A stretch of 64,000 nucleotides of DNA, taken from Eutreptiella sp. 'Long Island Sound 2002' (taxonomy: Eukaryota > Protista > Euglenida). The stretch lies in assembly GCA_964036045.1 (NCBI GenBank), contig OZ038378.1, positions 142,166,001-142,230,000 on the forward strand, in the 5' to 3' direction. The translations under genes and the position numbers were made by a program. Position 1 is the stretch's first letter. Every line of letters starts with the position of its first letter. The notes below the pieces were generated by a model, which was not told where the DNA came from, made no database searches, and saw only the letters and a list, made by a program, of their open reading frames with translations. Shown in pieces: positions 29,068-60,283 of this stretch.

Positions 29068-30195
<1,128 letters not shown>

Positions 30196-30478: not shown

Positions 30479-30970
30479 TCAATCAACAATAGGAGATGTT
30501 CTCTGTCGCTTTGCTTTTCTTTCGACGTCAGAATAGCGAAGGCTTTGGTCCAACCAATCTGGCATTTTTGCTTCCGTGTTCCGCTCAAGAGCCTTCTTCA
30601 GATCCTCCCAAGAAAATTTTGTTTCGTCATCTTCTGCCTCGGGATCGATCGGCCGCCGGAGGTGGTCCTGCATCTCAGGGCAGACGGTGCAATCCCACAG
30701 CGTCCTGACCCTTTGTGCCCAATTCTCTGCCGCATGGCCCATGTGCATGAGCCGTGTGTGGCCTATATTCGGGAGCTGCAGGCCGTCGCGCTCCCGGAGC
30801 CGCTGACACCGTCTGCGGCATGCCCAGAGCACCTGCAAGGCCTCCTTGCCGCCCTCGGTCACCAGGCCATGCCCTTTCATCCACCGCAGGAGAATGTGGA
30901 AGTGGTCTTCCTCTTCGAGGTTCACAAAGGCAAACCGCCGCCGCAAAGCAGCGTCCAATTCAGTGCGGCC
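30479..30970 (-). CDS. AAA domain 2, terminal exon
   Basis: CAG|GGC acceptor. Contains ELDAALRRRFAFVNL, IGHTRLM and TLWDCTVCPEMQDHL. Stop TGA at 30481-30479. Confidence 0.85.
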   Translation of the reverse strand, partial: GRTELDAALRRRFAFVNLEEEDHFHILLRWMKGHGLVTEGGKEALQVLWACRRRCQRLRERDGLQLPNIGHTRLMHMGHAAENWAQRVRTLWDCTVCPEMQDHLRRPIDPEAEDDETKFSWEDLKKALERNTEAKMPDWLDQSLRYSDVERKAKRQRTSPIVD

Positions 30971-31507
30971 CTGCCAAGAGGCGGGGGTGGCAGAGGCAGT
31001 GGGTAGTGCGCGGCGAGTTGAGGCACGATGCCCACATGTGCCGGGGGGGGGGGGGGGTTCGTCTGGGTACAGTTTCGTGAGGGGAAAATTGCACATCTCC
31101 ATTTTTGGTGCAGGGCCATCAGACACGGGGAACTTCGACACCCCCAACCCTCAGTACCTTGTGGACGATCAGTTGTGTGAGACTGTGGCAGGCCCACAAT
31201 TTGAACAATACCCATCAGAGATAAAAGAAGAAGCCATTTGCAAAGAAGATGGACCAACTGCCGACAACAGCGCCACGATACCCGGCGACCGCCGCCACGG
31301 AGGATGCACAAGCAGCAGCAAGTGCCCCAAATTGCGCAATAAATTTCGCGGGGAAATTTTCGACACCAAAACTGAAAAACGAAATTGTCCCCTGTCCTCC
31401 AACCGCCTATCCAACCGCCTCTGGGACCGCCTTCGAGGTCCCTTCCCCCCTCATGCATCCCTGGTCTTGGTCCTGTGCGCTACACCACAACGGAGGCTGC
31501 GCAGCAC

Positions 31508-31723
31508 CTGCTGATTGATGATGAGGATAATGTGTAGCCCTTTATCAAGACTAAACTCGTGGGTGCGGCCTGGCAAATATATGGCCTGGTCCCGATACTC
31601 CATCAAAAAGAACAACTCGCCGAGGACGCTGGGGATCCGGCCCTGGTCCCGCTGCTCAACGTACAGCACCAACACGTGCTCCTTCCCCTTGTTCCGCGCG
31701 GAGAACTCCAGCAGAGGTCCATC
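31508..31723 (-). CDS. AAA domain 2, exon with degenerate Walker B and NxxD
   Basis: CAG|GAT acceptor. Encodes DGPLLEF...VLVLYVEQRDQGRIPSVLGELFFLMEYR...LHIILIINQQ. Donor CAG|GTGCTG. 72 codons. Confidence 0.85.
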
Positions 31724-33547
31724 CTGAAGACGAGAGGCACCGGCAGAGGAAGGGCGCGGCATGAGGCGCACTGTAGCGACCTCATTGCGTGGGCGGAAAT
31801 TGGCGTCCATGTGGGGGTAGTGGGGTGGTTCGAGCCCCCCTTCAGGGCTCCCATGACGGGAGGCTGTAAACGGCCCTGGAGGGTGGCAAAAAGCTCTGGA
31901 ACTAAAGGCTGGGTTTATATGCCGGTTGATACTTCCGGGTGTATGTAGTTGTTGATGTGGGGGAGTCATAAAGGCTGAGTTAATGTACCGGAATCCTCCA
32001 CGCATGGGTGTCTCAAAGGGGGGGGACGAAACAGTGGTGGTGCCTATGTCCCGCCATTTCCGGCGATCATCATGGCCGATCCACTACAGCACAGCCCCCT
32101 GAGTCATGAGCACACGCTTCAAACTACCAACAGCACACTGCCCATTCACCTAAACTGCTGATAACCCATCTACCCTTCGAATCCTGTCAGTTGCACGAGG
32201 GTTCTGTCACGAGAGGCCCTTTCCCAGACCACCCCACCCCTCCTCCTTCTGCCCCCCCCCCCCCCCCACCCCCGTTTGGGCTTGGGTGGTAGGGCCCTGA
32301 CGCGGTGCTTGCCCTGACAGACTGCCCGGTGCCGCGCGGCGACCCCCCTATGCCGCCACCTGGTCCCTGGCATTGGGCCCCTGCACAAACCAGACTGCGC
32401 TCACGGAATCCCTCGGACACCAACAGCAATCGGACCACTTTGTGCGGGGTGGGCGGGCTTTCAATTTTTGGGGCAGAGGGGCGGAGGTCGATACAACCCT
32501 CTGGCTAGACGCCCACCCCCCCCCCCCCAAAAGAAGGGCCCAATTGACGGGACCCCCAAAATCGTACCGAGACTGACCCCCGGGCCCTGGAGGTGACCCG
32601 GACATCGGGAAAAAATGAAAATGGGGTTTTTGGAATCAATGCTCAAAAAAATTGTCGGCACCTTCGGCTCCACAGTTCAGAATAACTGATTCATGGTCTT
32701 GTGAAACGAGCCCCTTTCCCGAACCCCCCGCCCTGATTTGGGGGGCTCTATTGAACCCCCCCCCCCCCCCCCTCGAAGGTGAAAACCCAACCTCCCACGT
32801 CGGCAGCAAAACATGGGGGGGGGGGCGGGGGGACCGCCGGGGGACGTCCAGGACACAGAGACATGCCCCTGATCCGAATGAGGGGGGTAACAAATGGCTG
32901 TGGGACCATTTGAGGCACTCGTGGCGTATGGGGCGTGTTGTGCCCCAAATGTCGACGGTGGACAGCACCGCCCCACGGTCCGCTCTCCTTTTGCCGTGGG
33001 AACGCAACCTGAGGCAAAGAGGTGATGCGGGCCCATGTGCTCCACCCTCCACGCGGCGGGTCAATGCACATTCCTGATGCCCCCCTCCATGGCTACGCAC
33101 GCGTACTTTCCATGGCTACGCACGCGTACTTTCCATGGCTACGCACCCTTACGCACGCGTACGCCCCAACACTCCGCACGCTTGTGTACGCTTGGGCTCG
33201 GGGACACGGAGGTGGGCATCTTGTATAGTCACGCACTGCTTCTGTGCGGAAATGCAATTGGTGCTGGTGGAATGTCTGTTGAAGGGCGTGTGCCCGATCA
33301 GTAGACCCCGATATCGGACGCGACCGGCACTTAAGGGGCTTTGCGGCGAAAACAAAATTCGCACGTGGGGACAGGGAGATGACGCCCGCTTACGCCCCAA
33401 CACCGCACACGCCTGCGCACGCTCAGCCCTGGTCTTTGCGCACGCTTGTGACCACAGGTCTGCCGCAGACCACCGCCGCAGCCCCAGTGAAGCGGGAGGG
33501 GACATGCAAAGTGCGGGCCACGAGATGCGGAGGGATGCGCCCGGGAC

Positions 33548-34189
33548 CTTCATCTCAAACGCACCGCTCGCCGTCGGGCGGTAGCCACACACAAACTCTT
33601 CGTAGCTGAGGTTTGCGTGCAGCCGCACGAACAGGAGCCGCTCGTCCGACGCCGCGCCGTCCGCCTCAGCAGACTCAGGGCGAGAGGGCATGGCCGCCTC
33701 TGGTCCCGGCGAAGGCCTCACAAAGCGGTTGAGATGGGGAGCGGCCTCGTCCTCCTTCGGGGGAGGCCTCTCCCCCCGGATGCCTTCGTCAGCCTCGTCC
33801 TGCGTGTCTGCCTCGTCGTTCGGGGCGCGTCCCTCGCTGCGGTCGGGGCCAAGGAGCAGCCGGGCCAAGTCCTGGGCGATGAACTTCTTGCCGCTGTTGG
33901 GGGGCCCGATGATGGCCAGTTGCTTCTTCCGTTTCAGTAGCCACAGGTCTTCCATAAAATTCCCTTGCGGCGCAGTGCGCGGTGCTGCCAGTCTGAGGTC
34001 ACTGTCGGTGGGGGTGTCAAAGGGCACCTTTTCTTTGGTCTGGCCGGCGTTGTCAAGGATGTCGACGTGACGACCTTCGAATTCGCCCTTCATTTGGCCC
34101 CAGAGAGTCTTGAACCGGAACTCCTTTGCCCGCTCCGCATCGCGGAAGAGGTCCTCGACATATGGCACGACTTGACTGTCCCACAGAAT
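33548..34189 (-). CDS. End of AAA domain 1 and start of degenerate McrB-like AAA domain 2
   Basis: T-rich tract then GAG|ATT acceptor. Contains ILWDSQVVPYVEDLF, then KKQLAIIGPPNSGKK and VRLHANLSYEEFVCGYRP. Donor AAG|GTCCCG. 214 codons. Confidence 0.88.
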
Positions 34190-34722
34190 CTCGAAAAAAA
34201 AACAAGGCAAACTTGGCGGCGTTGAGTCAGTGGCCGAGCTGTGGGGGGGTTTACGGTGACGCCACGGAGCACGGCACAGGCAACAAGCACCGGACCTTCG
34301 GTGTCACAAACACAAATGGCATCAAGCGAACGGTCATTATTTTGGAAAGTAGTGGTAATATGTAGCACTTGTAAACCCCCTGCTACGCATCTTAGAGATA
34401 GAACAACCTTTGACACAAAGGCCGTTCAGTTTGACAATTTGAAGCAATGACACGTGACAATTAGCCGATGCCGTATCCTGACTGCCTACATGACAGTGGT
34501 GTGCAATGTGCTGTGGCCTGCTGCGGCATGCTGTAGCATGTGGTGGGTGTAGTGTGGCATTTGCAGTGTTGTGAGACATGCCACACCAGCTGGCCGTTGC
34601 AAGGGTTCTGCATTAGCGTCCTGCTGGGACTTTGCCAAGAGCAACACAGAGTCGCCACGGGCCACCGCACCAACCTCCCAATCCTCCATTTCGCAGTGGC
34701 ATTGCACACGTCCCCGACGCAC

Positions 34723-35268
34723 CTGTAGCTCCGCCCAGCCCTCTTCGAAGCACTTCACCCCAAGCACGTGACTTGGGCCAATGTACCCCGCGGTGCCCTT
34801 CAACTTGTCGTTGGCCATCTCCAACAAGCGGTCAGCCACTTCCCCTAGCGACACCGCACGGGCCTTGAGCTCGTCCGGGAGCCGCAGGCTGTCCTGCCGA
34901 AACTTGCGCCGGACGACATGTCGCAGCGGCGAGTCCGGCAGCCGCGGATCCATCGCCACGAATGCAAAGCTCTGTCGTAGCTCCGCGCCGATGCGCACGA
35001 GGGACCGATCGAATGTGTTCATCGTGCCCAGAATCACCAGGTTTTCCGGAAGCTGACTGACGATGTCACCCGAATACTGCAGCTGCACGCGCAGCCGTCG
35101 AGGGTTCGAGGGACCTGGTTCTTGTGTGGCATGGCGGCGGTACAGGAGGTCCACAAGGTCACCCATGACCTTCGATAGAAGGCAGCGGTTGACTTCGTCG
35201 ATCACCAGCACCACCGTGCCCGACGCGTGACGCTTCGCTGCTTTCACGGCCTCCAGGAATGGCCCGTC
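34723..35268 (-). CDS. McrB-like AAA+ domain 1, exon with Walker B and NxxD
   Basis: AAG|GAC acceptor. Contains DGPFLEA, VLVIDEVNR, LPENLVILGTMNTFDRS, LRQSFAFV and YIGPSHVL. Donor CAG|GTGCGT. 182 codons. Confidence 0.88.
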
Positions 35269-36607
35269 CTTGACAGAGGGCAAGGGTTGGGGTTTTGAGG
35301 GGTTGATAAGGGTTGGAAAGGGAGAGGGACGGGAAAAAATGACCGCGGGGGGGGACCGGGCGGTCAACTGCTGAGACCGGGTCGATAGACCTGCCGAGAT
35401 GCCCCCCCCCCCCCAATACAAAAAATGGGGTGGGGGTTAATTGACGGGGCCCCCACAATCCAACTGGGACCAACCCCCAGGCCCCCGGAGGTGACCTGAA
35501 GCCAAAAGTCGGGCAAAAGGAAAATGGTACTTTTGGCATCAGCGCGTTGAGAGTTCCGAAGGGTCATCAGTTGTCTTGCACTTTGGATGCTAAAACAAGG
35601 GATCATTCTCAACACCCAAAAAGTGTTCTCGCCGCCTTCAGTGCTGGATTTCACAGTGACTGATCACCGGCCCCGTCATGTGCCCCCCCCCCCCCCCTAT
35701 CCGTCAGGTTTCGGAAGCTCTATTGACCCCCCACACCGAGCAGCTGTGTGCCCGACTTCCCGAGTGTGTGTTTGGCGGTGGAGTGGGGGTCGCAAGGAGG
35801 CTGAGGCCGGAATCAGATGGCAAAGGGTGGTGGACTAGAAAATGGGATTCTGTGGTGTGGACCGGGCCATAGTGTGGGAGAGGGCGCTTGGAGAAGTTTT
35901 GCAGTGCTCCCTGCCATCGCGCTGAGGGCGTTCTTGCAGCTGCAGACTCCAGCACATTGGGGTGGTGTAAAAACACTTTTTTGCAAACGATTGTTGGGCT
36001 GCCGCAGGGTAACTCTGATGGCTATTGTATTTGTGTCATCGTCGGCCCCTCCTTTCATTCGCGGCACATCTTGTAGTCCTTTGTGTGCATACAACCAGCA
36101 GTGGGGCAGAGACTTGCCCCATGTGCCCTGCTGTGCGGACATGGGGAGCCTGATGACCAGTGATGGCCATAAGACGGTTCGCCCCCCCCCCCCACCCTAT
36201 CCCGTCCATGGGTAGGTGTCTGTGGATGGGTCCATGGGTCTGCAGGTCCGGCATCAATGCAATACTCCGTTGCACGCCCTGTGATGGTGGGGGGGACCAC
36301 TATCAGGCCATTTTCCAGGCATGGGGCTGTAAAAAAGGGAACAACAGGAAGTACACAACTTTACTGAAAAAACAGAGAACCGCAGGAACTACTCAACAAC
36401 AGTGACAAGTCCTCATCCACAGCATCCATGTGCAGCTTTGGCAAACAGTTTTGTCTGGTAAAGGACCAATATTTTGTAGTGACGGCACAGAAAAATGCTC
36501 CAGCGGGAGTGGGGCAGCGTGCATGTACGTGGAGTGAAGACGTGTCCTAGGGCAGAATTGGGTACACTGAAGGGCGGGCGTAGGGCAGGAAGTGGAGGAG
36601 ATAATGT

Positions 36608-36621
36608 GGGTGTGTGTGTGT

Positions 36622-36685
<64 letters not shown>
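36608..36685. repeat. (TG)n microsatellite, left flank of the pogo-like insertion; continues at 38697-38770
   Basis: Directly visible on both sides of the element. Confidence 0.9.
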
Positions 36686-36686
<1 letters not shown>

Positions 36687-36687
<1 letters not shown>

Positions 36688-38694
36688 CCTCCCCCCCCCG
36701 TGCCCAAGAACCAGCAATGTTTGACCGCGGAACCAGGGGTTGGTTCTTGCGCACACTTTTCCCCCTAAATTTGACCGCGGAACCAGGGGTTGGTTCTTGC
36801 GCACAGCCGTGGGCAACCCCGTACCGCGGAAAAAAAAAAATTTCCGGCGCGTTGCGCCGGGACATGCGTGCCCTCTCCTTTCCCACAGTTAACCACGTTG
36901 ACAAATGAACACCAAAGGAGTGAATCGCAGCTGACTGGGCTGTAGTGTGCCTTCCAACGTGCATGGGATGATCTACTGTTCAACTGGCTGAGACGTGAAA
37001 CCCTTCTTCCTGTGATACACCATCCTGAATTCCTGTCTGTGCTGCCCCTTGGGGCCAGGCTTCGGTGCTACACTCGCCTTTGGAGCTGGCTTCGGCTTAG
37101 GCTTAGGCTTGGGGTCTGGGACATTAAAATGCATGGGGACTGCATCATCATCCATGATGTCCCTTGTGAAAAACAGCTTGTTGTTGAACACATGTGCCAA
37201 GCCCCAGACACCCCTGGCTGCCTTTGCCCAGATGATATCCTCTTGTTGCACGCGACCATTGGGTTTACCCTTCCACACAATGGTGGGTCTTCCACGCAAA
37301 ATATCAGTGAGGGCCAGTGCGGGATCACCGTCGGCATCGGTGGTGTGCTCCACACGGACCATGAAATGAAGATACACGGTCCGATCCACTGATATCGGCG
37401 ATCTCTAAGGCTACGGTGGATGTTGGCCCTGCAAATGGCTGCACGCGGGACGAAAATGGACACATACGGACCTGTAGTGCTTTAGTAAAGGTGCCAGCAA
37501 TTCGTCATCCACGCGGCGGTATGACGATACTTTCTTCATCGTCAGTCTCCTCCGGCGCCGAAATCCAGACCACCAATTGGCCAAACGATCACCCTTGAGC
37601 TGTGCTATTTCTGTACTCATCTTGTACGCCTTTGCTAGCACCATTCGTTTCGTCACGCAAATGCGTCGTGCACGTCGCTTGACAATCCACGCTCGGAGCT
37701 CCCCCTCCACCTCATGAAACCGTGATTGCTTGCCGGGGTGAAGAGTCTTTGCCGTGCCCTTTTTTTTCGCCAATTTTTCCAACGCCTTGCGCTTGTCGTC
37801 CCACTTACACACCGAACCGTGGCTCCCCACTTTGTAGATGCGTGCTGCCTCGCGTGGCCCGTGCTTGTCAGAGTACGCCAAACAACGCAATTTGCGACGT
37901 ACATCGTAATGCACACGCTTTGGCGCCCTGTCGCTTTCAGCTCGTGACCGCTTGCGCTTGCGAACTGCCGGCTCCGCGCGGACAACGATTGTGGGTGCAG
38001 TGTCCTGTGCAGAACTGCTACTGGTGGGGAGTGAAGCATTAGGCCCAAAAAAGTTGGTGATCTCCGTTTGCTTCTGGACAGGCGCCGCAGAAAAGAAATT
38101 GGTAATCTCTGGTTGAATCTGGACAGGTCGCACACTGGGGGGCGCAGAATGCCGTGGGCGTCGTTTGGCAGATCGTTCCATTGGTCGTGTCCTTGGGGGT
38201 GGGGATGGGGACCGACTTGGTGCACTGTCCCATTCCGGAGAATCGGGGATCGTGGGAATGGGACGCGAGAGGTTGGCAATTAAAGCAGCTGGGTGCCTCA
38301 CCAGACGCTCATTGCGTTTGTACTCAATCTGCACTGTCTCAGACTGGGCACCAGGACCCAACACAGTGGCTGGAACAAGAGAGCCATCAGATCGCCGATA
38401 GAAGACAGACTCACCGGCAGTGTACATGGGAACGTCTGTGGTACAGAACAAGGAATGGAAGAGGTGGTGCAAAAGCAAACATGAGCCTGTGAGTGACTGA
38501 TAGGGTCCCCCCTGATGGGGGGACCCATAGTAACACACATGAAATGATGTCCTGCACACCTGAATAGCTGTCCTACATCCACCAGAAACATGAAAAACCC
38601 ACTACCCTGGTAAAAAAAGTGATGTGAGAATTTGACCGCGGAACCAGGGGTTGGTTCTTGCGCAAGGTGGTTCTTGGGCACGGGGGGGGGAGGG
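36687..38694 (-). mobile_element. pogo/Tigger-like (Tc1/mariner superfamily) DNA transposon, internally truncated
   Basis: 27-bp perfect TIRs (CCCTCCCCCCCCCGTGCCCAAGAACCA), TA on both sides (36685-86 and 38695-96), and a 33-bp subterminal motif repeated three times. ORF has CENP-B-type HTHs (EVEGELRAWIVKRR...W..GFRRR) and a partial DDE region (DRTVY...RPTIVWKGK). Confidence 0.88.
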
Positions 38695-38734
38695 TATGTG
38701 CGTGTGTTTGTGTGTGCGTGTGTGTGTGCGTGTG

Positions 38735-38771
<37 letters not shown>

Positions 38772-38971: not shown

Positions 38972-39013
<42 letters not shown>

Positions 39014-39018
39014 CGTGG

Positions 39019-39049
<31 letters not shown>

Positions 39050-39051
<2 letters not shown>

Positions 39052-39515: not shown

Positions 39516-39549
<34 letters not shown>

Positions 39550-42396
39550 TGCCAATTGCCAATTGCCCCACCACGGGGGTGATTTCATCGCCTTCAGTTC
39601 TCGCCTGTGGCAGTTCTTTGATGTCCATTGATTGTCCTTATCCACGTGTGTGTGTGTGTGCGTGTGTGTGTGCATGTTTGCACTTGCGTCTGCCTCTTGC
39701 AATAATTGCCTTGCCCGGCACCCCAGGCGCAGGGTTGCAGGCCTACTACTACACACCCCGCTGCCGTGCTTCCCTGTGATGCCTCACAGGTGCCGCTTGC
39801 TGCATGTGTACCAGCGCAGCAGAACAGGGAGAGCGACCTGTACACAGCACTGAGAGAACAGTCCGTCGCGGCCAGTCACCCAATGACCGGGGCACAAAGT
39901 GGGGCACGACAGGGGCTTCCAGCACAGGACGAAATCCCTCAAAGCCAAAACCATATGGACGGACCAGTGTGTGCCCCCTGCCCACCATCCAGTGCCGTAC
40001 TGCAAGTAGCCGCCTCTCTGGTCTAGGAGAGGGGAAGGGAGGGCGGCTTACCCCGAGGCAGGCGTCCAAAGAGGGGTCAAGGATGTCGTCCGGGAGACAT
40101 CATCAGTACACAGTCGCAGGTGAAAATCTTTCTTTCGCCGTTCGAAACATTTCCGGGCGCCATGACGGAGATTGTCCAGCACAGAATTCTGAAAATAAAA
40201 AAAAGGGGGAGGTTGTTTACCCTTTGCGGCGGAAAATGTTTTTGGTTGTGTGGGTCATTGTTGGTGACCTCAAACGTGCGAACATGAGTGTCTCCGCATT
40301 TGATAGTCATGCCCACACAAATTCTTGTCCCTCCATCATGGGGCCACCTTGGTGGAAATCTCGGCCATCTCGGTAGGAATTGGAGTCATCATGTACAGCC
40401 ATGTGGCAAAAACAACATGCTTCAAATGGCGTAAACACCCAGCTACCGAAAAAAGGGGAGGGGCTATGCGTAACCCTCATGACGTGCCTCCCGTAAAAGT
40501 CGCCCCCCCCCCCCCCCTTCTTGGGCCAGGCGGCCAAATAGTTGTTGCACTGCAAGCGCGCTGCGCGAAGGGCACCCCCAAATAGAAACAAATGCAGAAA
40601 AATTGCTAAATGAGGCAATGCATTCCGCAGTCTGAGTTGAGTGCACGGGGCGCAGCGCTACACAAGGGGGAGGGAAGGGAACCACGGGGAAAGGGAGGAG
40701 GGGTACCAAGTGGCCAGGCCGCCGAACGAGCAATCTGGAACGCCACATCGGCAAAACCCCCTTCCCCACGAGGGAACACCGCTGACACGCCACCGGTAGC
40801 GGCGCCCCGAACCAGAGAGAGAGCGCCTCTCACATGGGTGGAGAAAGGGCCCTGACCAGCGCTCCACAGGGGACGGCACCAGGGGACGCAGAGGGGGCCA
40901 CTCCGGCAGGGGGCTTGGACCCGCCAGTGGACTGGCTGGCCCCAAGAAGAGCAGCCCGGGAAAACCAGAAGAAGAGCACGAGAAGAAGGGGAGAGGGGCA
41001 GCAGAGTGGACCGCGGGGCCAAACCAGAACAACCCCCCCCCCCCCCCCGCGTACGAGGCAAAATCTTTCCACTGTCCGGGGGCACTGCACGGGTTGGTGG
41101 TTTGTTTGGGTAACGAACCACAACCCCTCAGCCCCTGGACTTTGACATCAAAGATAACATGCACTGGACGCAGTCGCAAACACAAAAACCAGTTGGGCAT
41201 CAAAAGACTTTGTATCCAACCCAACCCAACACCCAACCACCCGCCTGTGTGACATTTCGTTTCTCGCTGGTTTCCTTACAGGGCCCTGGGCAGCCACCCG
41301 TCCTTCCCTTCGAAGAGTGCGTTGCGTCCTTCTTGCATCTTATCCGTGTGAGTGGGGTCTCCGGCCTCCCCTGCGTCGAGCCACATGAGCCAACAGTGTT
41401 TGTCGGGGCAATTGCTTCGCGACGCAGCGGGTGGTGGCTGTTTGGCTGTGACATACTACGCCATGGGCCATAAAGGAGGTGGATAGCCCCTTCTCCCCCG
41501 AGTGTTGGGCTTCAGAACTAAGCTGAACCGCCCGGCCAATGCTTTCACAACCCGACAACAACAACTCTTGGCTGGCCACAAGTCCTGGCTCACGGTTCAC
41601 AGTATGAACCAGCCTGCATGCAGCCCCGGGTGTGCAGAGTGGTGAGGCACACTATCCTGCTCCTTTCCGGCAGTGAGTCCTACTGTCGGCCCTCAAATCT
41701 AAATGCAAATATTTGCCTGCACACAACCCCTCCGCCCTCACGTGCCGCGGTTCAGTCCGCAGTACGCCAAGTAGACCCCCAAACTGGCTCCCATGCTCCC
41801 AGCCGCCCCCCCCGCCCTCCCCACACACACAGACAAAGCCACACTCACCAACCCACCAACACACACTCACTCACTCACTCAATCACTAACATGACAAGGA
41901 CAATAACCCGAAGACAACATCCGGCGTCCTCCGATTAGCACCCGGGGGCATACCACATTCAGCCCACAGACAAGCCGTGCCACCAGAATCCGGTCTCGGG
42001 GTCGCTATTGACCCCCTGGAGCCCCCACTATTGGCGCGCCCAGATGACAGAGGAATGCATGGGTGATAGAGCGATGGAACGGGCCAATATTTGGAGGGCG
42101 GGGGCTGACGGGTGGTTGCACGTCAGCCCATCAGCTCTCTGTAACAACATGGCGGGCAGTCCTGGAAAGGGCGTCGGAGGGGCTGCCATAAAGACTGAGT
42201 GAATATGCCGGTTGGTACTGCCGAATGTATGTAGTTGTTCACTGTTTTGAGAGGGGAAGGGAAGCATTCACGTGTGGATGGGTGGGTGGCGTGGGTGGTG
42301 GGGATATTTGGATGGGTGGGCGTCGGGCAGGTGGTGGGGACTATATTGGAGAGGCGCTGGATTCTCGTGAACAGATGGAGAAGTAGAAAGCAATGC

Positions 42397-42755
42397 CTGC
42401 AGCTTGTAAGAAGCGCCGCCGCCGCCGCCGCCTCCACCGCTACTGAGGTCACTGTCCGAGACATTCGCGCCATTAGGGGCCACCGGGCGGTATCCACAAA
42501 CGAAGTCTTCGTAGCTGTACGCCGGATGGAACTGCACAAGGAACACACGGCCGCGGGCGCCCGCCAAGTGCCGCGCGTACTGCTGCACGGTCCATGACTT
42601 GCCGGTGCCCGGGGGGCCACAAAAGATAACGTTGCGCATGCTCTTCAACAAGAGGCTCCACTGCTCGAGTACGTTGGCATCTACCAGCGTCGCGCTATGC
42701 ACCCTCGAGATCTCCGGAGCGATTGCGTGTTGGGGTCCAAATATGAAATCCAGGC
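42397..42755 (-). CDS. McrB-like AAA+ domain 1, N-terminal exon (Walker A)
   Basis: RNVIFCGPPGTGKS and VQFHPAYSYEDFVCGYRP are McrB signatures. Phase-1 acceptor TCGTCAG|GC at 42756; an alternative phase-0 acceptor exists at 42856. Donor CAG|GCATTG (GC) is inferred from alignment with domain 2. Confidence 0.8.
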
Positions 42756-43831
42756 CTGACGACGCGAGGGTGGCGCAGAAGCAGCTGATTGGATGGCAGG
42801 CACTCTGCGAGAGGGTCCGACAAACGGGGCTGCGCAGGGCCACGTCAGACGGGCTCTGCAGAATAAGAACCCTTCGAAGAACAAAAAACACACATTAGAC
42901 AGTGTCCTATGCGCACAAACAGAGCAGCCGCAGTACTGTGCACAGGCTGGAAGCCCACTGCCACAGCCCCTACCCATGCCCCCCCCTGCAGTGTGGCAGT
43001 GCACTATAGGATGCCACTGCCCACTGCCGTGCGCGGTGTGGTGGTGCGATGACAAATGCCACTGCCCTTTGTGCAGAGGGGTAGCACACCAAGGGCAGCC
43101 AGTAGGGCACTGCCACATTGAAGGCGGCAGTGGACAACGGCACCTTCTGTACACACCGTATGACATACAAGCAAGTCCAACATGTGTTAGCGTATGGTAG
43201 AGGAAGAATGCGAAAAGTGTGGATGGAACCTCCTACAGACGTCCCCGATTTAACAAAGCTACCCACCAGGTGCTGACTGGAATCGACGCGATCGAAGGTA
43301 CATAATTGGATAACACAGCAGAACCCCGTCGACTGCCTGCCAATGGCTTCACAGGAGTGGCAACTCAGTAAGAAAAGGCGACTGGGACAGTACTCAGGGA
43401 TACGCGGGTGAGGAGGGTGGTAAACACAGGGGCGGGCATTGAGGTTCCCAGAGTCAAATTGAAAAAAGAGGCATGGATATCAAGACCCAGAAATGTAAAG
43501 CACCGCAGATTACATAAGACAGTGATAACATGACCGAGTGTACAGGGAGTTTTATCGGTATCAACACACAGCAAACCAAAAGGCAAATCATAAACTCCCC
43601 CTGCAACACACGCACACACGCACACACGTACATGCGTGCCCACCCCATCGCCACGCATGCACCACGCACACACGTGGGCACACATGAAGACGATACACCG
43701 CAGTGCCAGTGTAATTGATTTTCATGAATGGCATTGTTACTGCTTTGCGGAATCGACTGGCGGCACTGGGCTCAAGGGCAGCGACTGACGGAGAGGAGAG
43801 AGCACTGGAACGTGGAAGGAAATACGTGTAC

Positions 43832-43897
43832 CTTTCCTGTTCCGCGTCAGCAGCCCTGTGATCTGGTTGTGCACAGAGTCACTGTCGCCTGGATTGC
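43832..43897 (-). CDS. Putative LRR C-cap/linker exon (66 nt)
   Basis: CACAG|GC acceptor and G|GTACAC donor, phase 1-1. Continues the last LRR as ...LDVR-GNPGDSDSVHNQITGLLTRNRK, which resembles the usual GN...I..LL.RN cap of RI-like LRR arrays. Confidence 0.6.
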
Positions 43898-45700
43898 CTG
43901 TGCACACCATGATGTGGTGTAGCAAAAATGGCCCAAAAACCATCAGAATAACAGGATACGAAAAAAACAAATCATTGGAAAAATTTCGGATTTCAAGAAG
44001 GCAACGAATAACGAGCCGCTATCCTAATCGTTCACATCATGCCGACCACTCCACCCTGGCTTGGAACAACGATTTAGGTATGATTGCTGTCAGTAGAGAT
44101 GATTCGTCAGTGGACCGGAATCCGAATGGTGACGACTCGGCCGAAGCGACCGAGTATGGTACCGGTGAAGAACACAACAGGAATGTATCGAACACATCAT
44201 CCTGGTCAGAAAACTCATTCAGCCCCACCAAAAAGATTACTGGCTAAGAAGTCAAACGATACCAGAGACCAACACCTGGATTGGATGAGAAAGACCTAAA
44301 CGATTGAATATTGTTTGCCACGTTGCGAGGCCACAACTATCCAGAGTGTCTACCACTCAATGTTAGAGTGGCGCCTCAAGGTATCTCAAGCATGGTGTTG
44401 TCACGAGACAATCAGAGAGATGTATAAAAGACGAGGCACCATTGAGGGATGTTGCCGACAGGTGAGGACGCTCGTTCAAAAATGAGCTCATAACGCAAGA
44501 GGGTGTGTAGCGAAGTTTGCATTGCGGTACTAGAGTTCGACCACGGGGAACTGATGGGCCGGCCAATCATGTCTCAGAGAAATGAATCGACATGGTTTTG
44601 TGAAGAACAAGGATTATTGGGTGGAGTATGCATTGTGCCTGGCATCGATCAACTGATCTTCCAGTGGCAAGAATTTACTGACCATACAGACATCCAGAAC
44701 AATCAGCTCCAAGAGCTTGAGTTTTGGAGGCCATTGCACATTTCAAATGTCCAATCCTCGGCAAGGCAATTGCTATACAAGGGCTGGCAGATTCCTAGGC
44801 TTGTCGGTTTTGAGGAGGTATGTCGGACAACTACTACTGGAGACATTAGAAATGGATGTCGAGCACACCAGGAAATCAATTGCTTTACGAATGGCCCAGG
44901 GATTCTCAGACCCACAAGGGAAGGGGGGGGGGGGTATGGGAGCCCCCTAGCTGGACGCCCCACATAAACAGGCTCCCGTGACGGGACCCAGGGGATTAGA
45001 ATGGGGGGGGGGGGTTAGTTATGGTGTGAGTACACCTAGGTCAAACCTAACCCTAATTGAGAGAGGATATTGGGCCTGAGATGGTGGGGGAGGGAACATC
45101 GGGTACACTACTAAACGGGGCCAAATAAGTACGCATGTGGAGGGAAACAAAGAATGATTCAGGCCATTGCCCGACTATACCCCCTCTGAAACCCTTCCAC
45201 ACTCGCTTTGCTCGCTCGAGAGGCAGCCGCGAATGGGTGTCTGTCTGATGGCCCACCTCCTCTGCGCTGGTGACCGGCGATGGTGCGTGAGCCTTTCAGT
45301 CGCTTGCGATATATGCGGTAACGCCCCATGTCCCACAATGTTCGCAGGCAGACCTGTACCTTGTGGTGCCCGTCAGTGGGTATCCCGTGATGAGGCTGCG
45401 TTATAGCGGTCGTGACTCCCCAACCGCCCTCCTGGTACTTCACCCCAAATCCCTCAAAGCACCACAGGGAACGCAGGAATGCAAAAGCCCTTACTTTTCA
45501 CCCACCCGAGTGCCCTCTTCAGGGGACCCTCTCGGCACCGGGATGGATTGAACTGTGGTCAGGAACAATCTTACACTTGACTTTGCCAGAAGAATGCGGC
45601 GAGATGGGCGTTAATGCAGGTGCGGGTGCAGGACGGGGCGCGGGGGAGGGGTCCTGGAATGAACCCGCGCCTTGTGTCTGCGTACAAGGACATCACATAC

Positions 45701-45784
45701 CCCTAACATCGAGGGTTTGCAACGTAGAGTTCTTCTCCAGGGCCTTGCCCAGCGCAGCCCCTCCTTCGCTTCCGATTTTGTTGT
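45701..45784 (-). CDS. LRR exon (28 aa), type A, last full repeat
   Basis: CAG|84 nt|GTATGT. Encodes xNKIGSEGGAALGKALEKNSTLQTLDVR. Confidence 0.85.
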
Positions 45785-48633: not shown

Positions 48634-48717
48634 CGTAAACATCGAGGGTTTGCAACGTAGAGTTCGTCTCCAGGGCCTTGACCAGCGCAGCCCCTCCTTT
48701 ATTTCCGATGGCGTTCA
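48634..48717 (-). CDS. LRR exon (28 aa), type B
   Basis: CAG|84 nt|GTATGT. Encodes xNAIGNKGGAALVKALETNSTLQTLDVY. Confidence 0.85.
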
Positions 48718-50429: not shown

Positions 50430-50513
50430 CGCTAACATCGAGGGTTTGCAACGTAGAGTTCTTCTCCAGGGCCTTGCCCAGCGCAGCCCCTCCTTCGCTT
50501 CCGATTTTGTTGT
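50430..50513 (-). CDS. LRR exon (28 aa), type A
   Basis: CAG|84 nt|GTATGT. Encodes xNKIGSEGGAALGKALEKNSTLQTLDVS, also visible in ORF 50422..50715. Confidence 0.85.
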
Positions 50514-52219
50514 CTGCATGTGTGCGTGTGGCTGTGCACACGCAGGTCCCCACAAACGCGCCCCGCTGCACTCCACCAACACACGACCAACGGCGTCTCC
50601 ACCGGTCAGCCCATTCCACGCAATGCTCAGCGTTTCGCCCACTCAACACAACACCATTCCTTATGTTGTGGGGCATGCCACAAAACAGTGTACGCCCACA
50701 ACGCCCTTTACACACCCTTCACACGCCCGTTGGACAGCTCCATCCAACAACCCAACACCGCGGCTTGTGAGGGAGCGGCCAGCATGTGCATGGCTACGGG
50801 GGGCGGGGGGGGGCTGTGCAGCAGAGGGACGGTCCGTTCCAGCCCCCTCCCCAGTGCTCGACCAATGCCAGATACAACGACCGGGCGGCAGTGCAGTCGC
50901 AGGAGGTGTTCGAGCCGCATTCTGCACCAGCACAGCACACACGCAAACGCGATGACAGGGCAACACCACCACACAGTGATTGCGTCACGAGTTCAGAGGG
51001 AGGGAGACTGTTAGGCAGTCAGAGGCTGCTTGCGCTAACCGTTGATGGCTGAGACACAAACAACCACCGGGTTGCAGATTCCCGTGCTTCTCAGTTTTGA
51101 GGAGGAATGTCGGACAACAATACGAATGGAGACGGTAGAAATGGCTGTCGAGCACATCAGGAAATCGATTGCTTTATGAATGTCATAGGCAATGGCCTTG
51201 TGGTCCTGGTGCTACTTCGCACTGTGTCGCCAGCGCAAGGGCAGAGGCGGTACTCCCCAACAGCCCACACTACGCATGGAACCGGAGGCCACACACGACG
51301 GCCACGGCCATGTGCCAAGGGGCCTGCCCATCCCCCATTCCCTCATCACACCCCTCCACACTCCAGTCCTCGTCCGCCACCGCCAACGCCACGGGGACTC
51401 CACAGCTGGTCCCAGTGCTACGCCGTGCACGTCCCACAAAACCATGAATCGGAAAACGGGGGGGTGAAGGATGAAGGGGGTCAGGCTGCAGTGCCTCACA
51501 AACAAAAGCGGACAAAAGCACATCCAGCTCAACGGTGCTATGGACGGCTCGAGAAGATGCACAACCGCAGCACAACACAAACCCACTGGTGTGTGAAATG
51601 CATATAACACGTCTTCGCTCTACACGGCGGACGCCTCAACGCTTCCTAAATCCACCGCACTCCTCTGCTGTGGCAACCGTCACCGTACACTGTGTCGCCT
51701 GCACCTGCCAGAACCACTGCACATGTGTTTGCCAATGGAATCACTGCAAGGCCTTGTTCCGTCTGTCCACATTGACCACACCACAGCGTACAATTCCTTT
51801 GCAGAGTAGCGAAGGCGCACGCATGTGCGCATGTCGGAAGCACCAGGCCTTTGCTAATTCCTTGGTGAACCATCGAGGCTGCCTACCAGCCAAGTTCAGC
51901 CCTCGGAGACCACCCGCACACCAGGACATAAAATTCGATTCACCCAGTGGCCGCCATGTGGCGCATTCTCGATCGATGACCAGTTCTACCCCCAGGCGCT
52001 CCACTATTGCTAGACCCTTCACATACCTCCACCCCCATGCGTGTGGTGTGCGGGGACACCACCAGTCCCCAAGCCCGCAGGAGTAAATGTTGAGTTTTTG
52101 CATTTGGCCCATGCCATTTCACAAAAGCATTGACTTGTGGTTTACAATGCGGTTTTTTGGTTTAAAAAATCGCCTACAAAAACGACATGCCCATACCCCA
52201 TCAAGTGCATCCCCATTCT

Positions 52220-54138: not shown

Positions 54139-54695
54139 GTGGCATAGGTTTTGGTGTTGTCCAAATATACACGCACAGTGCCCCCACGGCCCATGCCCCA
54201 ATATCCCCACACCCCTAAATCGTTCGCAATGCCTAAGCAATCCCTAGCACCTCCAAGTAGCAGAAAGGGAACCTGAAGGGCAGGCATTGCACAGGGCATC
54301 GGAGTGGCAGAAGCAGTGGGCGTTAGTTTGATGGGTCACGTGTTTGATGTGGTGCTGGTTGGTGTGCCTGGGGTGCTGGTTGGTGTGCCTGTGGAAGTGG
54401 GCGGGAGGGTTGTGGGGGTTCCACTTTCAGGTTGTGATGTGCCTGTGAACAGTTGAGTGACCTGCACTGTAAGTTTAGTGGGATGCCTTGTAGTACACCT
54501 GGTGTCCATTGCAGGTGCGGGTGCAGGACGCTGCGCAGGGGAGGGGTCTTGGAATGAACCTTTGACGCTTTTGTTCCGGGGCTAAGCTGCTTATGTTGCC
54601 ACAGGCATTGTTCTGCACCCCGTCAACTGCACTGCGCCAACCAGAACACAGGAACGAACCCGCGCCTTGTGTCTGCGTACGAGCACATCACATAC

Positions 54696-54779
54696 TGCAA
54701 ACATTGAGGGTCTGCAACGCAGAGTTCGTCTCCAGGGCCTTGCCCAGTGCAGCCCCTCCTTCATCTCCGATGGCGTTCG
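54696..54779 (-). CDS. LRR exon (28 aa), type B
   Basis: CAG|84 nt|GTATGT, phase 1-1. Encodes xNAIGDEGGAALGKALETNSALQTLNVC. Confidence 0.85.
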
Positions 54780-57700
54780 CTGCATGTGTGCGTGTGGCTG
54801 TGCACACGCAGGTCCCCACAAACGCGCCCCGCTGCATTCCACCAACACACGACCAACGGTGTCACCACCGGTCAGCCCATTCCACGCAATGCTCAGCGTT
54901 TCGCCCACCCAACACAACACCATTCCTTATGTTGTGGGGCATGCCACAAAACAGTGTACGCCCACAACGCCCTTTACACACCCTTTCACACACCCGTCGG
55001 ACAGCTCCATCCAACAACCCAACACCGCGGCTTGTGAGGGAGCGGCCAGCATGTGCATGGCTACGGGGCGTGGGGGGGCTGTGCGGCAGAGGGACGGTCC
55101 GTTCCAGCCCCCTCCCCAGTGCTCGACCAATGCCAGAAACAACGACCGGGCGGCAGTGCAGTCGCAGGAGGTGTTCGAGCCGCATTCTGCACCAGCACCG
55201 CACACACGCAAACACGATGACAGGGCAACGCCACAACACAGTGATTGGGTCACAAGTTCAAAGGGAGGGAGACTGTTAGGCAGTCAGAGGCTGCTTGCGC
55301 TAACCGTTGATGGCTGAGACACAAACAACCACCGGGCGGCAGATTCCCGTGCTTCTCAGTTTTGAGGAGGAATGTCGGACAACAATACGAATGAAGACGA
55401 TGGAAATGGATGTCGAGCACAACAGGAAATCGATTGTTTTATGAATGTCCCAGGCAATGGCCGTGTGGTCCTGGTGCTACTTCGCACTGTGTCGCCAGCG
55501 CAAGGGCAGAGGCGGTACTCCCCATCAGCCCACACTACGCATGGAACCGGAGGCCACACACGACGGCCACGGCCATGTGCCAAGGGGCCTGCCCATCCCC
55601 CATTCCCTCATCACACCCCTCCACACTCCAGTCCTCGTCCGCCGCCGCCAACGCCGCGGGGACTCCACAGCTGGTCCCAGTGCTACGCCGTGCACGTCCC
55701 ACAAAACCATGCATCGAAAAACGGGGGGATGAAGGATGAAGGGGGTCCGGCTGCAGTGCCTCACAAACAAAAGCGGACAAAAGCACATCCAGCTCAACGG
55801 TGCTATGGAGGGCTCGAGAAGATGCACAACCGCAGCACCACACAAACCCACTGGTGTGTGAAATGCATATAACACGTCTTTGCTCTACACGGCGGACGCC
55901 TCAACGCTTCCTAAATCCACCGCACTCCTCTGCTGTGGCAACCGTCACCGTACACTGTGTCGCCTGCACCTGCCAGAACCACTGCACATGTGTTTGCCAA
56001 TGGAATCACTGCAAGGCCTTGTTCCGTCTGTCCACACTGACCACAGCACAGCGTACAATTCCTTTGCAGAGTAGCGAAGGCGCACGCATGTGCGCATGTC
56101 GGAAGCACCAGGCCTTTGCTAATTCCTTGGTGAACCATCGAGGCTGCCTACCAGCCAAGTTCAGCCCTCGGAGACCACCCGCACACCAGGACATAAAATT
56201 CGATTCACCCACTGGCCGCCATGTGGCGCATTCTCGATCGATGACCAGTTCTACCCCCAGGCGCTCCACTACTGCTAGACCCTTCACATACCTCCGCCCC
56301 CATGCGTGTGGTGTGCAGGGGCACCACCAGTCCCCAGGCCCGCAGGAGTGAATGTTGAGTTTTTGCATTTGGCCCATGCCATTTCACAAAAGCATTGACT
56401 TGTGGTTTACAATGCGGTTTTTCGGTTTAAAAAATCGCCTACAAAAACGACATGCCCATACCCCATCAAGTGCAGCCCCATTCTGTGGCATAGGTTTTGG
56501 TGTTGTCAAAATATACACGCACAGTACCCCCACGGCCCATGCCCCAATATCCCCACACCCCCAAATCGTTTGCAATGCCTAAGCAATCCCTGGCATCTCC
56601 GAGTAGCAGAAAGGGTATCTGAAGGGGGTAGCTTACGGCGTACCCATTGGTACGCTCGTGATGTGGGTGAGGGGCTCTGCATGCTTTTTGGGCAGGCATT
56701 GCACAGGGCATCGGAGTGGCAGAAGCAGTGGGCGGTAGTTTGATGGTTCACGTGTTTGATGGGGTGCTGGTTGGTGGCCGCACAGCCCCCCCACGCCCCG
56801 TAGCCATGCACATGCCGGCCGCTCCCTCACAAGCCGCGGTGTTGGGTTGTTGGATGGAGCTGTCCGACGGGTGTGTGAAGGGCGTGTAAAGGACGTTGTG
56901 GGCGTACACTGTTTTGTGGCATGCCCCACAACATAAGGAATGGTGTTGTGTGAATGAAAACGGTGGAAATGGATGTCGAGCACATCAGGAAATCGATTGT
57001 TTAATGAATCCCAGGCAATGGCCGTGTGCTCCTGGTGCTACTTCGCACTGTGTCGCCTGTACCTGCCTGATCAACTGCACATATGTTTGCCGTCGGAATC
57101 ACTGCACGCTCTTGTTCAGTCCATTCACACTGACCACAGCACAGCGTACCATTCCTCGGCAGAGCAGGGAAACCATCGGGGCTGCCTACCAGCCAAGTTC
57201 AGCAGTTGTAGACCACCCACCCACCAGTACACGGAATTCCATTCACTCACTGGCCCCCATGTGGGTTGCAATCTCGCCCAGGCGCTCCACTACTGCTAGG
57301 TCCGTCACGTATCTCCGCCCCCTTTTGCACTTTGCCACAATACCCAAAAATATGCCACAGAATGGGGCTGCGCTGGATGGGGTTTCGGCATATTAGGTCT
57401 TGCGCAAGATTTCAAACCGGAAAACCGCATTGTAAACCACAAGTCAATGCTTTTGTGCAATGGGAAGGGGGCGTGCACAATGCACATCACAACGTCCCCT
57501 CCCACAATCCGCACGCAGCATCTCCGCCACAGCGTCCCCCCTCGGAAGCGCCCCTTTCCCCTTCCCAAACGCTTGCGCACACCGAACGCCCACAGCCAGC
57601 GCAAGGGCAGAGGCTGTACTCCCCATCGGCCCACACTACGCATGGAACCCGAGGCCCTGCCACGGCCATGTGCCAAGGGGCCTGCCCATCCCCCATTCCC

Positions 57701-60199
57701 TCATCACACCCCTCCACACTCCAGTCCTCGTCCGCCGCCGCCAACGCCGCGGGGACTCCACAGCTGGTCCCAGTGCTACGCCGTGCACGTCCCACAAAAC
57801 CATGCATCGAAAAAACGGGGGGATGAAGGATGAAGGGGGTCCGGCTGCAGTGCCTCACAAACAAAAGCGGACAAAAGCACATCCAGCTCAACGGTGCTAT
57901 GGAGGGCTCGAGAAGATGCACAACCGCAGCACCACACAAACCCACTGGTGTGTGAAATGCATATAACACGTCTTCGCTCTCAGACCTCCTAAGTCTCCGG
58001 CACCGAAGTCACCGGCCTTGTAAAAAACTGTAAAAAACCTGTAAAAAAAAACCTGTAAAAAAGCTGTAAAAAAAACTTGTAAACAACTGCACAAGGGGTT
58101 GTGGGATGCATCCCGTCATTGCCTGATCGTTGCTAAATGGTTTGTGATATTTCCTCCCAGCTTTTGTCAACTTTTTTCGGCCTTTCAATGGTTTGGTACA
58201 CCCAGTACCCCCCCCCCCCCTTGTATAAGCTACGCAAAACTCCCAAATTAATACGGTCCCTACGCCTACTGTAGCTTGGACAAGGCCGTAGACCCGCAGG
58301 TTCAAAAAGAGCAGATTGCGTGGCGAGCTGGTGCAACAAAGGGGAATATAATGCACAAATATCCCCAAAATCAGAGCTATGTGGGTTCAGATGGGCAAAC
58401 AATCACAAAAAATGTGTCCATGAATCTATGTAGCTGGCAAATTTGTCACCAAACCCATGTCTCATGTGGCCGCAGTACATTTGTAGCGGATCAAATTAGG
58501 TACCAAATTAATACAGCCCCGACACTCGCTGTAGCTTGGACGGGCGTAGCTTATACAGAGGAGGGGGGGGGGTACATAACAAACCACACATCAGCACAGC
58601 AGTACGATGCACAAACACAGCTCCTGCATGCCCCTTGTTGTTTCATTTTTCTTATTGTAAATTGCCAGTCACCGCAGTCACCGAGTGTAAAAAAAACTCC
58701 CCAACCAGCAATCACCGAGGGTCACCGAAATCCCCGCTACTTAGGAGCCCTGCCGTCGCCGTCCGCCGCCGCCAACGCCGCGGGGATTCCACAGCTGGTC
58801 CCAGTGCTACGCCGTGCACGTCCCACAAAACCATGAATCGAAAAACGGGGGGATGAAGGATGAAGGGGGGTCAGGCTGCAGTGCCTCACAAACAAAAGCG
58901 GACAAAAGCACATCCAGCTCAGCGGTGCTATGGACGGCTCGAGAAGATGCACAACCGCAGCACAACACAAACCCACTGGTGTGTGAAATGCATATAACAC
59001 GTCTTCGCTCTACACGGCGGACGCCTCAACGCTTCCTAAATCCACCGCACTCCTCTGCTGTGGCAACCGTCACCGTACACTGTGTCGCCTGCACCTGCCA
59101 GAACCACTGCACATGTGATTGCCGATCGAATCGCTGCAAGGCCCTGTTCCGTCTGTCCACATTGACCACACCACAGCGTACAATTCCTTTGCAGAGTAGC
59201 GAAGGCGCACGCATGTGCGCATGTCGGAAGCACCAGGCCTTTGCTAATTCCTTGGTGAACCATCGAGGCTGCCTACCAGCCAAGTTCAGCCCTCGGAGAC
59301 CACCCGCACACCAGGACATAAAATTCGATTCACCCAGTGGCCGCCATGTGGCGCATTCTCGATCGATGACCAGTTCTACCCCCCAGGCGCTCCACTACTG
59401 CTAGACACTTCACATACCTCCACCCCCATGCGTGTGGTGTGCAGGGGCACCACCAGTCCCCAGGCCCGCAGGAGTAAATGTTGAGTTTTTGCATTTGGCC
59501 CATGCCATTTCACAAAAGCATTGACTTGTGGTTTTTCGGTTTAAAAAATCGCTTACAAAAACGACATGCCCATACCCCATCAAGTGCAGCCCCATTCTGT
59601 GGCATAGGTTTTGGTGTTGTCAAAATATACACACAGTACCCCCACGGCCCATGCCCCAATATCCCCACACCCCCAAATCGTTTGCAATGCCTAAGCAATC
59701 CCTGGCATCTCCGAGTAGCAGAAAGGGTATCTGAAGGGGGTAGCTGACGGCGTACCCATTGGTACGCTCGTGATGTGGGTGAGGGGCTCTGCATGCTTTT
59801 TGAGCAGGCATTGCACAGGGCATCGGAATGGCAGAAGCAGTGGGCGTTAGTTTGATGGTTCACGTGTTTGATGGGGTGCTGGTTGCTGTGCCTGTGGAAG
59901 TGTGCGGCAGGGTTTCTAGGGGTTCCACTTTCAGGTTGTGATGCGCCTGTGGACAGTTGAGTGACCTGCACTGTAAGTTTAGTGGGATGCCTTCTAGTAC
60001 ACCTGGTGTCCATTGCAGGTGTGGGTGCAGGACGGGGCGCGGGGGAGGGGTCCTGGAATGAACCTTTGATGCTTTTGTTCCAGGGCTAAGCTGCTTATGT
60101 TGCCACAGGCATTGTTCTGCACCCCGTCAACTGCACTGCGCCAACCAGAACACAGGAACGAACCCGCGCCTTGTGTCTGCGTACGAGCACATCACATAC

Positions 60200-60283
60200 C
60201 GCTAACATCGAGGGTTTGCAACGTAGAGTTCGTCTCCAGGGCCTTGCCCAGCGCATCCCCTCCTTCCTTTCCGATTTTATTGT
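60200..60283 (-). CDS. LRR exon (28 aa, RI/NLRC3-like), type A
   Basis: CAG|84 nt|GTATGT, phase 1-1. Encodes xNKIGKEGGDALGKALETNSTLQTLDVS. Confidence 0.85.

Follow-up and report, generated by a model that had tools for sequence, protein, structure and literature searches.

The question raised by this locus is whether a euglenid nucleus has retained parts of a bacterial restriction system, and whether the motor protein of that system has acquired a new recognition module. The locus lies in Eutreptiella sp. 'Long Island Sound 2002' (contig OZ038378.1, positions 142,166,001 to 142,230,000); we refer to this whole stretch of 64,000 nucleotides as the window, and coordinates are window positions or, beyond its end, window equivalents. 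The minus strand carries five leucine-rich repeat (LRR) exons followed by five exons encoding two tandem McrB-like AAA+ domains, and the contig beyond the window contains eleven more LRR exons and, upstream of these, a McrC-family gene (Table 1). We favor, tentatively and as something short of probable, the reading that this nuclear locus derives from a bacterial McrBC-type restriction system and that the LRR array would be the N-terminal specificity module of the McrB-like protein.

The McrB-like gene provides the firmest part of the answer. Its exons (A to E) were placed by splice signals and homology, and we infer all junctions other than B/C from sequence. Joined, they encode 750 amino acids with no internal stop, and the two McrB-type domains described in an earlier note on this DNA are both found in this product, the second in degenerate form. 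In domain 1 the Walker A, Walker B and NxxD signatures are all present (GPPGTGKS, VLVIDE and NTFD); NxxD is universal in McrB-like GTPases, and is needed for hydrolysis along with Walker A and Walker B (PMC11090510). Domain 2 has lost all three (GPPNSGKK, LYVEQ and NQQG), so that only one of the two domains qualifies, and its counterparts of the four domain 1 motifs in Table 1 read GPPNSGKK, LHANLSYEEF, VLVLYVEQRD and IINQQGRT. The arginines are distributed the other way, being kept in domain 2 (RRRF in ALRRRFAF) and lost in domain 1 (ELRQSFAF). The two domains are 27% identical and have a common intron position (..KLQ/DGPF and ..EMK/DGPL, where the slash marks the junction).

Close relatives are confined to three short metagenome contigs in ENA, all from the same study: L001 (P0018), L002 (P0172) and L003 (P0173). 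P0018 shares 55% identity with exon B and, across domain 1 as a whole, 44%. These contigs are eukaryotic. Their open reading frames (ORFs) read through CAG/GT donors at the B/C position, and in L001 also at the C/D position, and the A-B intron is absent from all three. In the window this intron is 7 kb long and requires a GC donor (CAG/GCATTG), which is supported because the homologues read uninterrupted across the junction point, with QYKKQPGPF and QYEVRDGPF in relatives corresponding to YKLQ/DGPF here. Searches with exon A, exon B and P0018 returned no transcript-derived protein and only the window ORFs, the three metagenome contigs and bacterial McrB. These protein searches gave no paralogue of exon B, and scans of JGI metagenomes for peptides of exon D and for a 40-nt word from exon A gave no match.

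Several comparisons point to McrB as the source of this gene. Pfam AAA_5 matches exons A and B, and the ORFs of exons C-E match no Pfam family; AAA_5 is the best family for exon A (E 6e-9), where nSTAND3 falls under its cut-off (15.5 vs 27.2 bits), and the only one for exon B, whose ESM Atlas feature neighbours carry AAA_5 and McrB_lid. Neither a NACHT/NB-ARC nor a Roc-COR nucleoside triphosphatase (NTPase) is among the Pfam matches of the AAA exons. The NCBIfam McrB model PRK11331 matches exons A, B and C (E 3e-12, 2e-12 and 8e-6), far under its equivalog cut-off, and bacterial McrB family proteins are the next-best matches of exon A and P0018 (47-64% local identity, E to 1e-41). Domain 1 is 39% identical to bacterial McrB (E 3e-54) and domain 2 33-35% (E 1e-28), each being nearer to bacterial McrB than to the other, and P0018 matches the solved E. 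coli McrB structures (6HZ4, 6UT6; E 4e-31). The earlier assignment of a McrB-type, restriction-system motor is borne out by the matches to PRK11331, to bacterial McrB and, via P0018, to the E. coli structure. Sequence comparison thus shows the tandem NTPase gene to be an intron-containing member of the McrB family with bacterial McrB ancestry. No Pfam domain is present in the 45 residues ahead of the P-loop, where a McrB-like N-terminal modified-DNA recognition domain was not found, and the sole candidate recognition module upstream of the AAA exons is the LRR array.

The gene is expressed. The only RNA data set containing this DNA is an estuary metatranscriptome (X1), whose contigs cover 42407-42623 (exon A, exact), 34773-34923 and 34723-34775 (exon B) and 33812-34189 (exon C; one contig 33812-34118). 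In a 151-nt contig, 34723 is followed directly by 34189, and the 533 nt left out have GT..AG borders on the minus strand; depth is zero inside this B/C intron, and cover is exonic only and of low depth. The spliced contig shows that the McrB-like gene is transcribed and is spliced as modelled at this junction. There is no X1 cover on exons D and E, on the first 132 nt of exon A or on a 66-nt segment lying between the LRR array and exon A. A second X1 contig of exon C (33945) has an 18-nt in-frame insertion that adds QRINEW ahead of the degenerate P-loop of domain 2; it is a natural, frame-preserving allele.

A candidate partner for this protein is encoded on the same strand. The earlier note had seen no McrC partner, which is correct within the window, but about 48 kb past the window end there is a PF10117 gene in the same orientation. 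Two same-strand ORFs (L009) match Pfam PF10117, the McrC family, with 47.4 and 32.8 bits (cut-off 23.9). The matches span positions 64-135 and 133-317 of the profile, whose first 63 positions had no counterpart at this locus. The translation shows EPDIV...GDVKWK, a PD..DxK nuclease pattern, and the ORFs have no PDB McrC match by sequence. These matches show a linked, co-oriented McrC-family gene with introns, the predicted product of which is a PD-(D/E)xK nuclease. Downstream of its end, the first LRR exon follows after 14.45 kb and exon A after ~69 kb, and the order on the transcribed strand is McrC-like gene, 16 LRR exons and tandem McrB-like gene, in a span of ~90 kb. The presence of a McrC-family gene on the same strand strengthens, rather than weakens, the restriction-system reading. 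After the nuclease domain the last ORF continues for ~250 protein-like residues to its own stop (e.g. IYYEVKVRGTTPSTVVVVDGDRTFQFVDPF; L009:6725-7483, window-equivalent ~112.6-111.9 kb), and this tail has no Pfam or PDB match.

Between the two genes lies the LRR array. Each exon encodes one 28-residue repeat that appears to be of the ribonuclease inhibitor (RI) type (e.g. NKIGSEGGAALGKALEKNSTLQTLDVR), starting with two split-codon bases and ending with one, such that both borders are in phase 1. The 40-nt acceptor flank (..catgcag/) is identical in all five window exons, which are followed by the donor /gtatgtgatg. Pfam LRR_6 gives sub-threshold matches on single exons (12.7-20 bits vs a cut-off of 23.4), and the repeat pattern LxxLxLxxNxIgxxGaxaLaxaLxxN with its 28-residue period is present in all 16. 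The earlier note gave 60283 as its end coordinate; walking the 504-kb ENA contig of the locus with ORFs as handles (L004-L010; contig plus is window minus strand) extends the array to window-equivalent 97441, with 11 intact exons in addition to the five already described. Over 12 kb beyond the upstream end of the array, the same contig contains no further LRR exon and no Pfam domain.

The manner in which these cassettes differ is informative. Among the 16, the mean pairwise difference is 11.9% in the exon, 1.3% in the 100 nt before it and 7.0% in the 100 nt after it, and the three codon positions contribute evenly to the differences among exons (390/312/321). Introns that are kept alike while the exons diverge by amino-acid changes are the pattern of diversifying selection on the cassette array. 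A different explanation is that the cassettes are a non-functional tandem duplication of pseudo-exons, with the AAA gene starting from an unrecognised small exon or a non-AUG codon; this would fit the lack of RNA seen over LRR exons and a DNA depth over the cassettes of about 10x the single-copy level, which shows that they are repeated at other genome loci. We think it very unlikely, as all 16 exons are open with intact splice sites and exceed their upstream intron flanks ninefold in variability, the opposite of what neutral decay would give. All 16 exons being intact, the LRR array can with good reason be regarded as functional coding DNA under selection.

Two further observations concern the array and its surroundings. 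First, no position varies more than the codon split between two LRR exons (D, G, R, V, A or N), whose residue is set by the neighbouring exons, so that exon order itself would alter the residue. Second, between the final LRR exon and the 66-nt segment there is an extremely abundant short repeat (44994-45120), with a summed DNA-contig depth of ~41,000 compared to ~26 for single-copy DNA (run X2).

Whether the array and the McrB-like gene form one protein depends on what lies upstream of exon A. Its frame is open from a stop at 42894, and the sole in-frame ATG before the P-loop is that of a Met six residues ahead of GPPGTGKS, itself preceded by an out-of-frame ATG. The segment upstream of this Met (ATLVDANVLEQW; ATLVDANVLEQWSLL) is conserved in the relatives (ESLVELRVVQEW; ESLVELRVVQEWDRL) and corresponds to the McrB model from profile position 190 onward, where the AAA+ core begins. 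Since there is no start codon ahead of this conserved AAA+ N-terminus, a coding exon upstream of exon A is required. On the other side, the LRR exons all end in phase 1 and the final one joins 42755 in frame, either directly (G/GC) or through the 66-nt segment. Cassette homology past the final exon stops ~100 nt downstream, at 45597, and, because the array is selected and derived from an internal exon, its last donor needs a downstream acceptor. The likeliest upstream coding source of exon A would be the LRR array, with donor 45701 spliced to the phase-1 acceptor 42755 either directly or by way of the 66-nt segment. The earlier proposal that eleven minus-strand exons can be joined in frame (five 84-nt LRR exons, the 66-nt segment and five AAA exons) holds, the phases and borders being confirmed by sequence.

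The 66-nt segment had been described as a cap exon. It is a candidate exon, open and in the same phase with AG/GT borders, and its acceptor is the first AG downstream of a ~90-nt T-rich tract; it has no RNA cover and no Pfam match. It was considered both as a degenerate LRR, where the similarity to LRR exons is not significant (p ~0.44), and as a homologue of an upstream exon in L001 (described below), to which it has no significant similarity.

This same segment is where a second explanation enters, that there are two or three separate genes. The McrB-like gene would start at the ATG at 43943 or 43910 with a first exon running to donor 43832, by means of a spliced leader or an upstream promoter, and the LRR array would be another gene, ending by read-through (GM and a stop after any LRR exon, which is how the frame of the final exon 45701-45784 would read if left unspliced) or by a 53-codon read-through of the 66-nt segment to a stop at 43737. 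Both ATGs are in frame, X1 shows AAA exons and no LRR exon, and in the three related contigs in-frame ATGs that could be used lie close to where the AAA exon begins. However, the stretch in which coding would start is T-rich up to its first AG, resembling a 3' splice site, and its first ATG (43975) is out of frame. A selected array of internal-exon descent with an intact last donor needs a downstream partner, and an unrelated, co-oriented 52-kb LRR gene placed exactly between McrC and McrB homologues would be an odd coincidence. Dinoflagellate and euglenid spliced-leader sequences were both sought in the window and neither occurs. We regard separate genes as a serious explanation, although a rather doubtful one.

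The related contigs bear on both explanations. The window and its relatives are alike from the acceptor onward (GLDFIF in the window vs ELGDIL and ELQVIF in relatives), and the upstream DNA of L001-L003 was sought in the window locus with no match. In L001 there is a 93-nt phase-1/1 exon (59-151, NAISSDILSEVKAALASNPKEQEMEQKLRK) situated 235 nt upstream of a strong phase-1 acceptor and in frame with the AAA exon, a layout that parallels the window arrangement. With this layout in L001 and in-frame ATGs in all three, the contigs do not discriminate between the two explanations. We note two other features of this region. The 150 nt upstream of the AAA exon (L001:264-386, L002 and L003) are gap-free and 75-82% identical, conserved like coding blocks. 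About 60 nt upstream of the acceptor in all three, the sequence ATGGTCCYAG/GTAGGAGC may represent a very small first exon with a 51-nt phase-1 intron after it.

Several points weigh against a fused LRR-McrB protein. The in-frame ATGs at 43943 and 43910 could begin a separate gene whose first exon overlaps the 66-nt segment, and a phase-1 donor spliced into the stronger-looking alternative exon start at 42855 (phase 0) would yield E-P-V-stop. No RNA read or contig spans the junctions 45701>43897 or 43832>42755 or covers any LRR exon, and X1 is without signal on the LRR exon at 45701-45784 even though AAA exons are covered at low depth; this missing signal argues only weakly against fusion, since cover is also lacking for about two thirds of the AAA coding sequence. 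A 5' exon for the LRR array was not found within the 12 kb upstream of it. In L001-L003 an in-frame ATG is conserved ~20 codons before the acceptor and is followed by a donor-like CAG/GTAGGAGC, and the later ATGs of these contigs could also serve after spliced-leader addition. The upstream exon of L001 was rejected as an LRR, having pattern-level likeness only (p ~0.09) and no Pfam match, and no LRR-McrB protein is present in the protein collections searched. The ring model and the McrC partnership set out below are inference only.

A third arrangement attaches the array to the other gene: the LRRs would form the C-terminal end of the McrC-like gene, or one giant McrC-LRR-McrB transcript would take in all three elements. 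The elements do share strand and order, and the first LRR exon needs an upstream phase-1 donor, of which the last McrC ORF has several (GT sites past the nuclease domain). Against this, that ORF runs on through its protein-like tail to its own stop, the gap to the array contains no recognised exon, and in bacteria the specificity domain is on McrB (PMC11090510). We consider such an arrangement quite improbable.

If the array is joined to the McrB-like gene, as we prefer, a variable LRR solenoid would occupy the place of the DNA-recognition domain of bacterial McrB. Three tandem chains might form a six-domain ring with three active sites, in which the domain 1 sites would be completed by the arginines of domain 2, and ligand capture by the LRRs could govern ring assembly or GTP hydrolysis. 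The McrC-like nuclease would be the effector; domain 1 keeps the NxxD aspartate, which in E. coli contacts McrC (PMC11090510). The broadest form of this proposal is that the euglenid has kept a full McrBC-type machine and re-aimed it, with a hypervariable 16-repeat LRR solenoid, fused to a tandem McrB ring motor, sensing non-self and a McrC-like nuclease executing the response, a prokaryote-derived innate immunity; taken as a whole we hold this to be unlikely.

Table 1. Coordinates of the LRR exons, the McrB-like gene and the intervening candidate elements (window positions or window equivalents)
Feature	Position	Strand	Description
Upstream LRR exons	97441, 95146, 92849, 90554, 87364, 85215, 83595, 79522, 77228, 72462, 64142 (window-equivalent)	-	located by contig walk
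LRR exon NKIGKEGGDALGKALETNSTLQTLDVS	60200..60283	-	84 nt, phase 1/1; 12th of 16 cassettes
LRR exon NAIGDEGGAALGKALETNSALQTLNVC	54696..54779	-	84 nt, phase 1/1
LRR exon NKIGSEGGAALGKALEKNSTLQTLDVS	50430..50513	-	84 nt, phase 1/1; weak Pfam LRR_6 match
LRR exon NAIGNKGGAALVKALETNSTLQTLDVY	48634..48717	-	84 nt, phase 1/1
Final LRR exon	45701..45784	-	84 nt, phase 1/1; donor G/gtatgtgatg intact; LRR_6 E 0.0007-0.0025
Two ATGs in frame with 66-nt segment	43943-43941 and 43910-43908	-	rival start of an independent AAA gene (MVFGPFLLHHIMVCTGNPGD..)
Candidate 66-nt linker exon NPGDSDSVHNQITGLLTRNRK	43832..43897	-	phase 1/1; open in LRR frame; borders cacag/ and /gtacac (AAAG/gtacac)
AAA exon A	42397..42755	-	N-terminal helix of AAA+ core, Walker A GPPGTGKS, FHPAYSYEDFVCGYRP; phase-1 acceptor; putative GC donor
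AAA exon B	34723..35268	-	Walker B VLVIDEVNR, NxxD within MNTFDRS, lid of domain 1
AAA exon C	33548..34189	-	linker and start of domain 2 (GPPNSGKK, LHANLSYEEFVCGYRP)
AAA exon D	31508..31723	-	degenerate Walker B of domain 2 (VLVLYVEQRD), IPSVLGELFFLMEYRD; 60% identical to L001
AAA exon E	30479..30970	-	GRTELDAALRRRFAF (arginines kept), domain 2 lid, basic tail KAKRQR, stop 30481-30479
Domain 1 motifs	GPPGTGKS 42618-42595; FHPAYSYEDF 42531-42502; VVLVIDEVNR 35214-35185; MNTFDRS 35022-35002	-	

The window is eukaryotic DNA with a GC content of ~55% and long CA/TG microsatellites. One of these, a (CA)310 tract that is 99% pure (29577-30196), starts ~280 nt downstream of the AAA gene stop, and shorter TG/CA runs are present within the A-B intron at 36605-36685, 38697-38770, 38976-39049 and 39516-39551. 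The same intron contains a weak Tc5-type helix-turn-helix ORF (37411-38559, minus strand), a transposon remnant, and a second remnant is an RNase H ORF at 16303-17478 (minus strand; E 5e-22). In the most GC-rich part of the window (63-68%) there is a polysaccharide lyase family 8 ORF (5717-7282, minus strand; Lyase_8 E 6e-22, Lyase_catalyt E 2e-14), which may be a bacterial-type gene in the euglenid genome.

Several bacterial defence modules have eukaryotic descendants, and a full-text literature search found no LRR-McrB architecture or euglenid McrBC pair described. Here, both halves of McrBC are linked in a protist, with an expressed McrB-like gene near to bacterial McrB and a co-oriented McrC-family gene, whereas a 2024 census set eukaryotic homologues aside (PMC11090510). 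If the LRRs are the specificity module, a restriction motor-nuclease pair would have been re-aimed by the kind of variable repeat sensor used in animals, plants and brown algae, and the locus would provide a defined place for testing a re-aimed McrBC in a euglenid.

One of the known systems close to the locus is bacterial McrBC type IV restriction (E. coli McrB/McrC; PMC11090510), with which the locus shares the McrB AAA+ core with Walker A, Walker B and NxxD in domain 1, the linked co-oriented PF10117 gene and, putatively, a variable module at the place of the McrB specificity domain. The euglenid locus differs in being eukaryotic and nuclear with spliceosomal introns, in having its genes ~69 kb apart in the order McrC then McrB, and in an NTPase whose single chain combines an intact domain with a degenerate one, with the LRR array as candidate replacement for the DNA-binding N-terminus. 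Two McrB-type AAA_5 domains per chain are also found in tandem proteins from prokaryotic metagenomes (P0019-P0023, P0030 and P0053), and thus the tandem itself may be inherited; these are 31-37% identical and have neither LRRs nor introns, and P0019 lies in what resembles a compact operon, where a 394-aa gene follows 2 nt after it. Eukaryotic McrB homologues have been described, by a secondary citation, as a highly divergent animal branch with no associated McrC known (Iyer et al. 2004, as cited in PMC11090510). As far as that citation describes it, the animal branch resembles the present gene in placing a McrB-type AAA+ domain in eukaryotic proteins, and differs in that the gene here is 39-47% identical to bacterial McrB and has a McrC-family neighbour.

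Among repeat-bearing receptors, the one-repeat-per-exon logic has a precedent in brown-alga LRR-ROCO and NB-ARC-TPR genes, for which an immune-receptor role has been proposed (PMC3341825). These share with the euglenid locus the symmetric one-repeat exons, the cassette duplication and, if the fusion is correct, the attachment of variable repeats to an NTPase (PMC3341825), although they belong to another lineage, have LRRs of another type than the 84-nt RI-like ones seen here, and have a ROC GTPase or STAND module in place of the McrB AAA+ NTPase. The NLR/STAND receptors likewise combine an LRR sensor with an oligomerising P-loop NTPase; in contrast, there is no NACHT/NB-ARC in the euglenid gene, its LRRs would be N-terminal, and its NTPase would be a ring-forming AAA+ protein with a nuclease partner.

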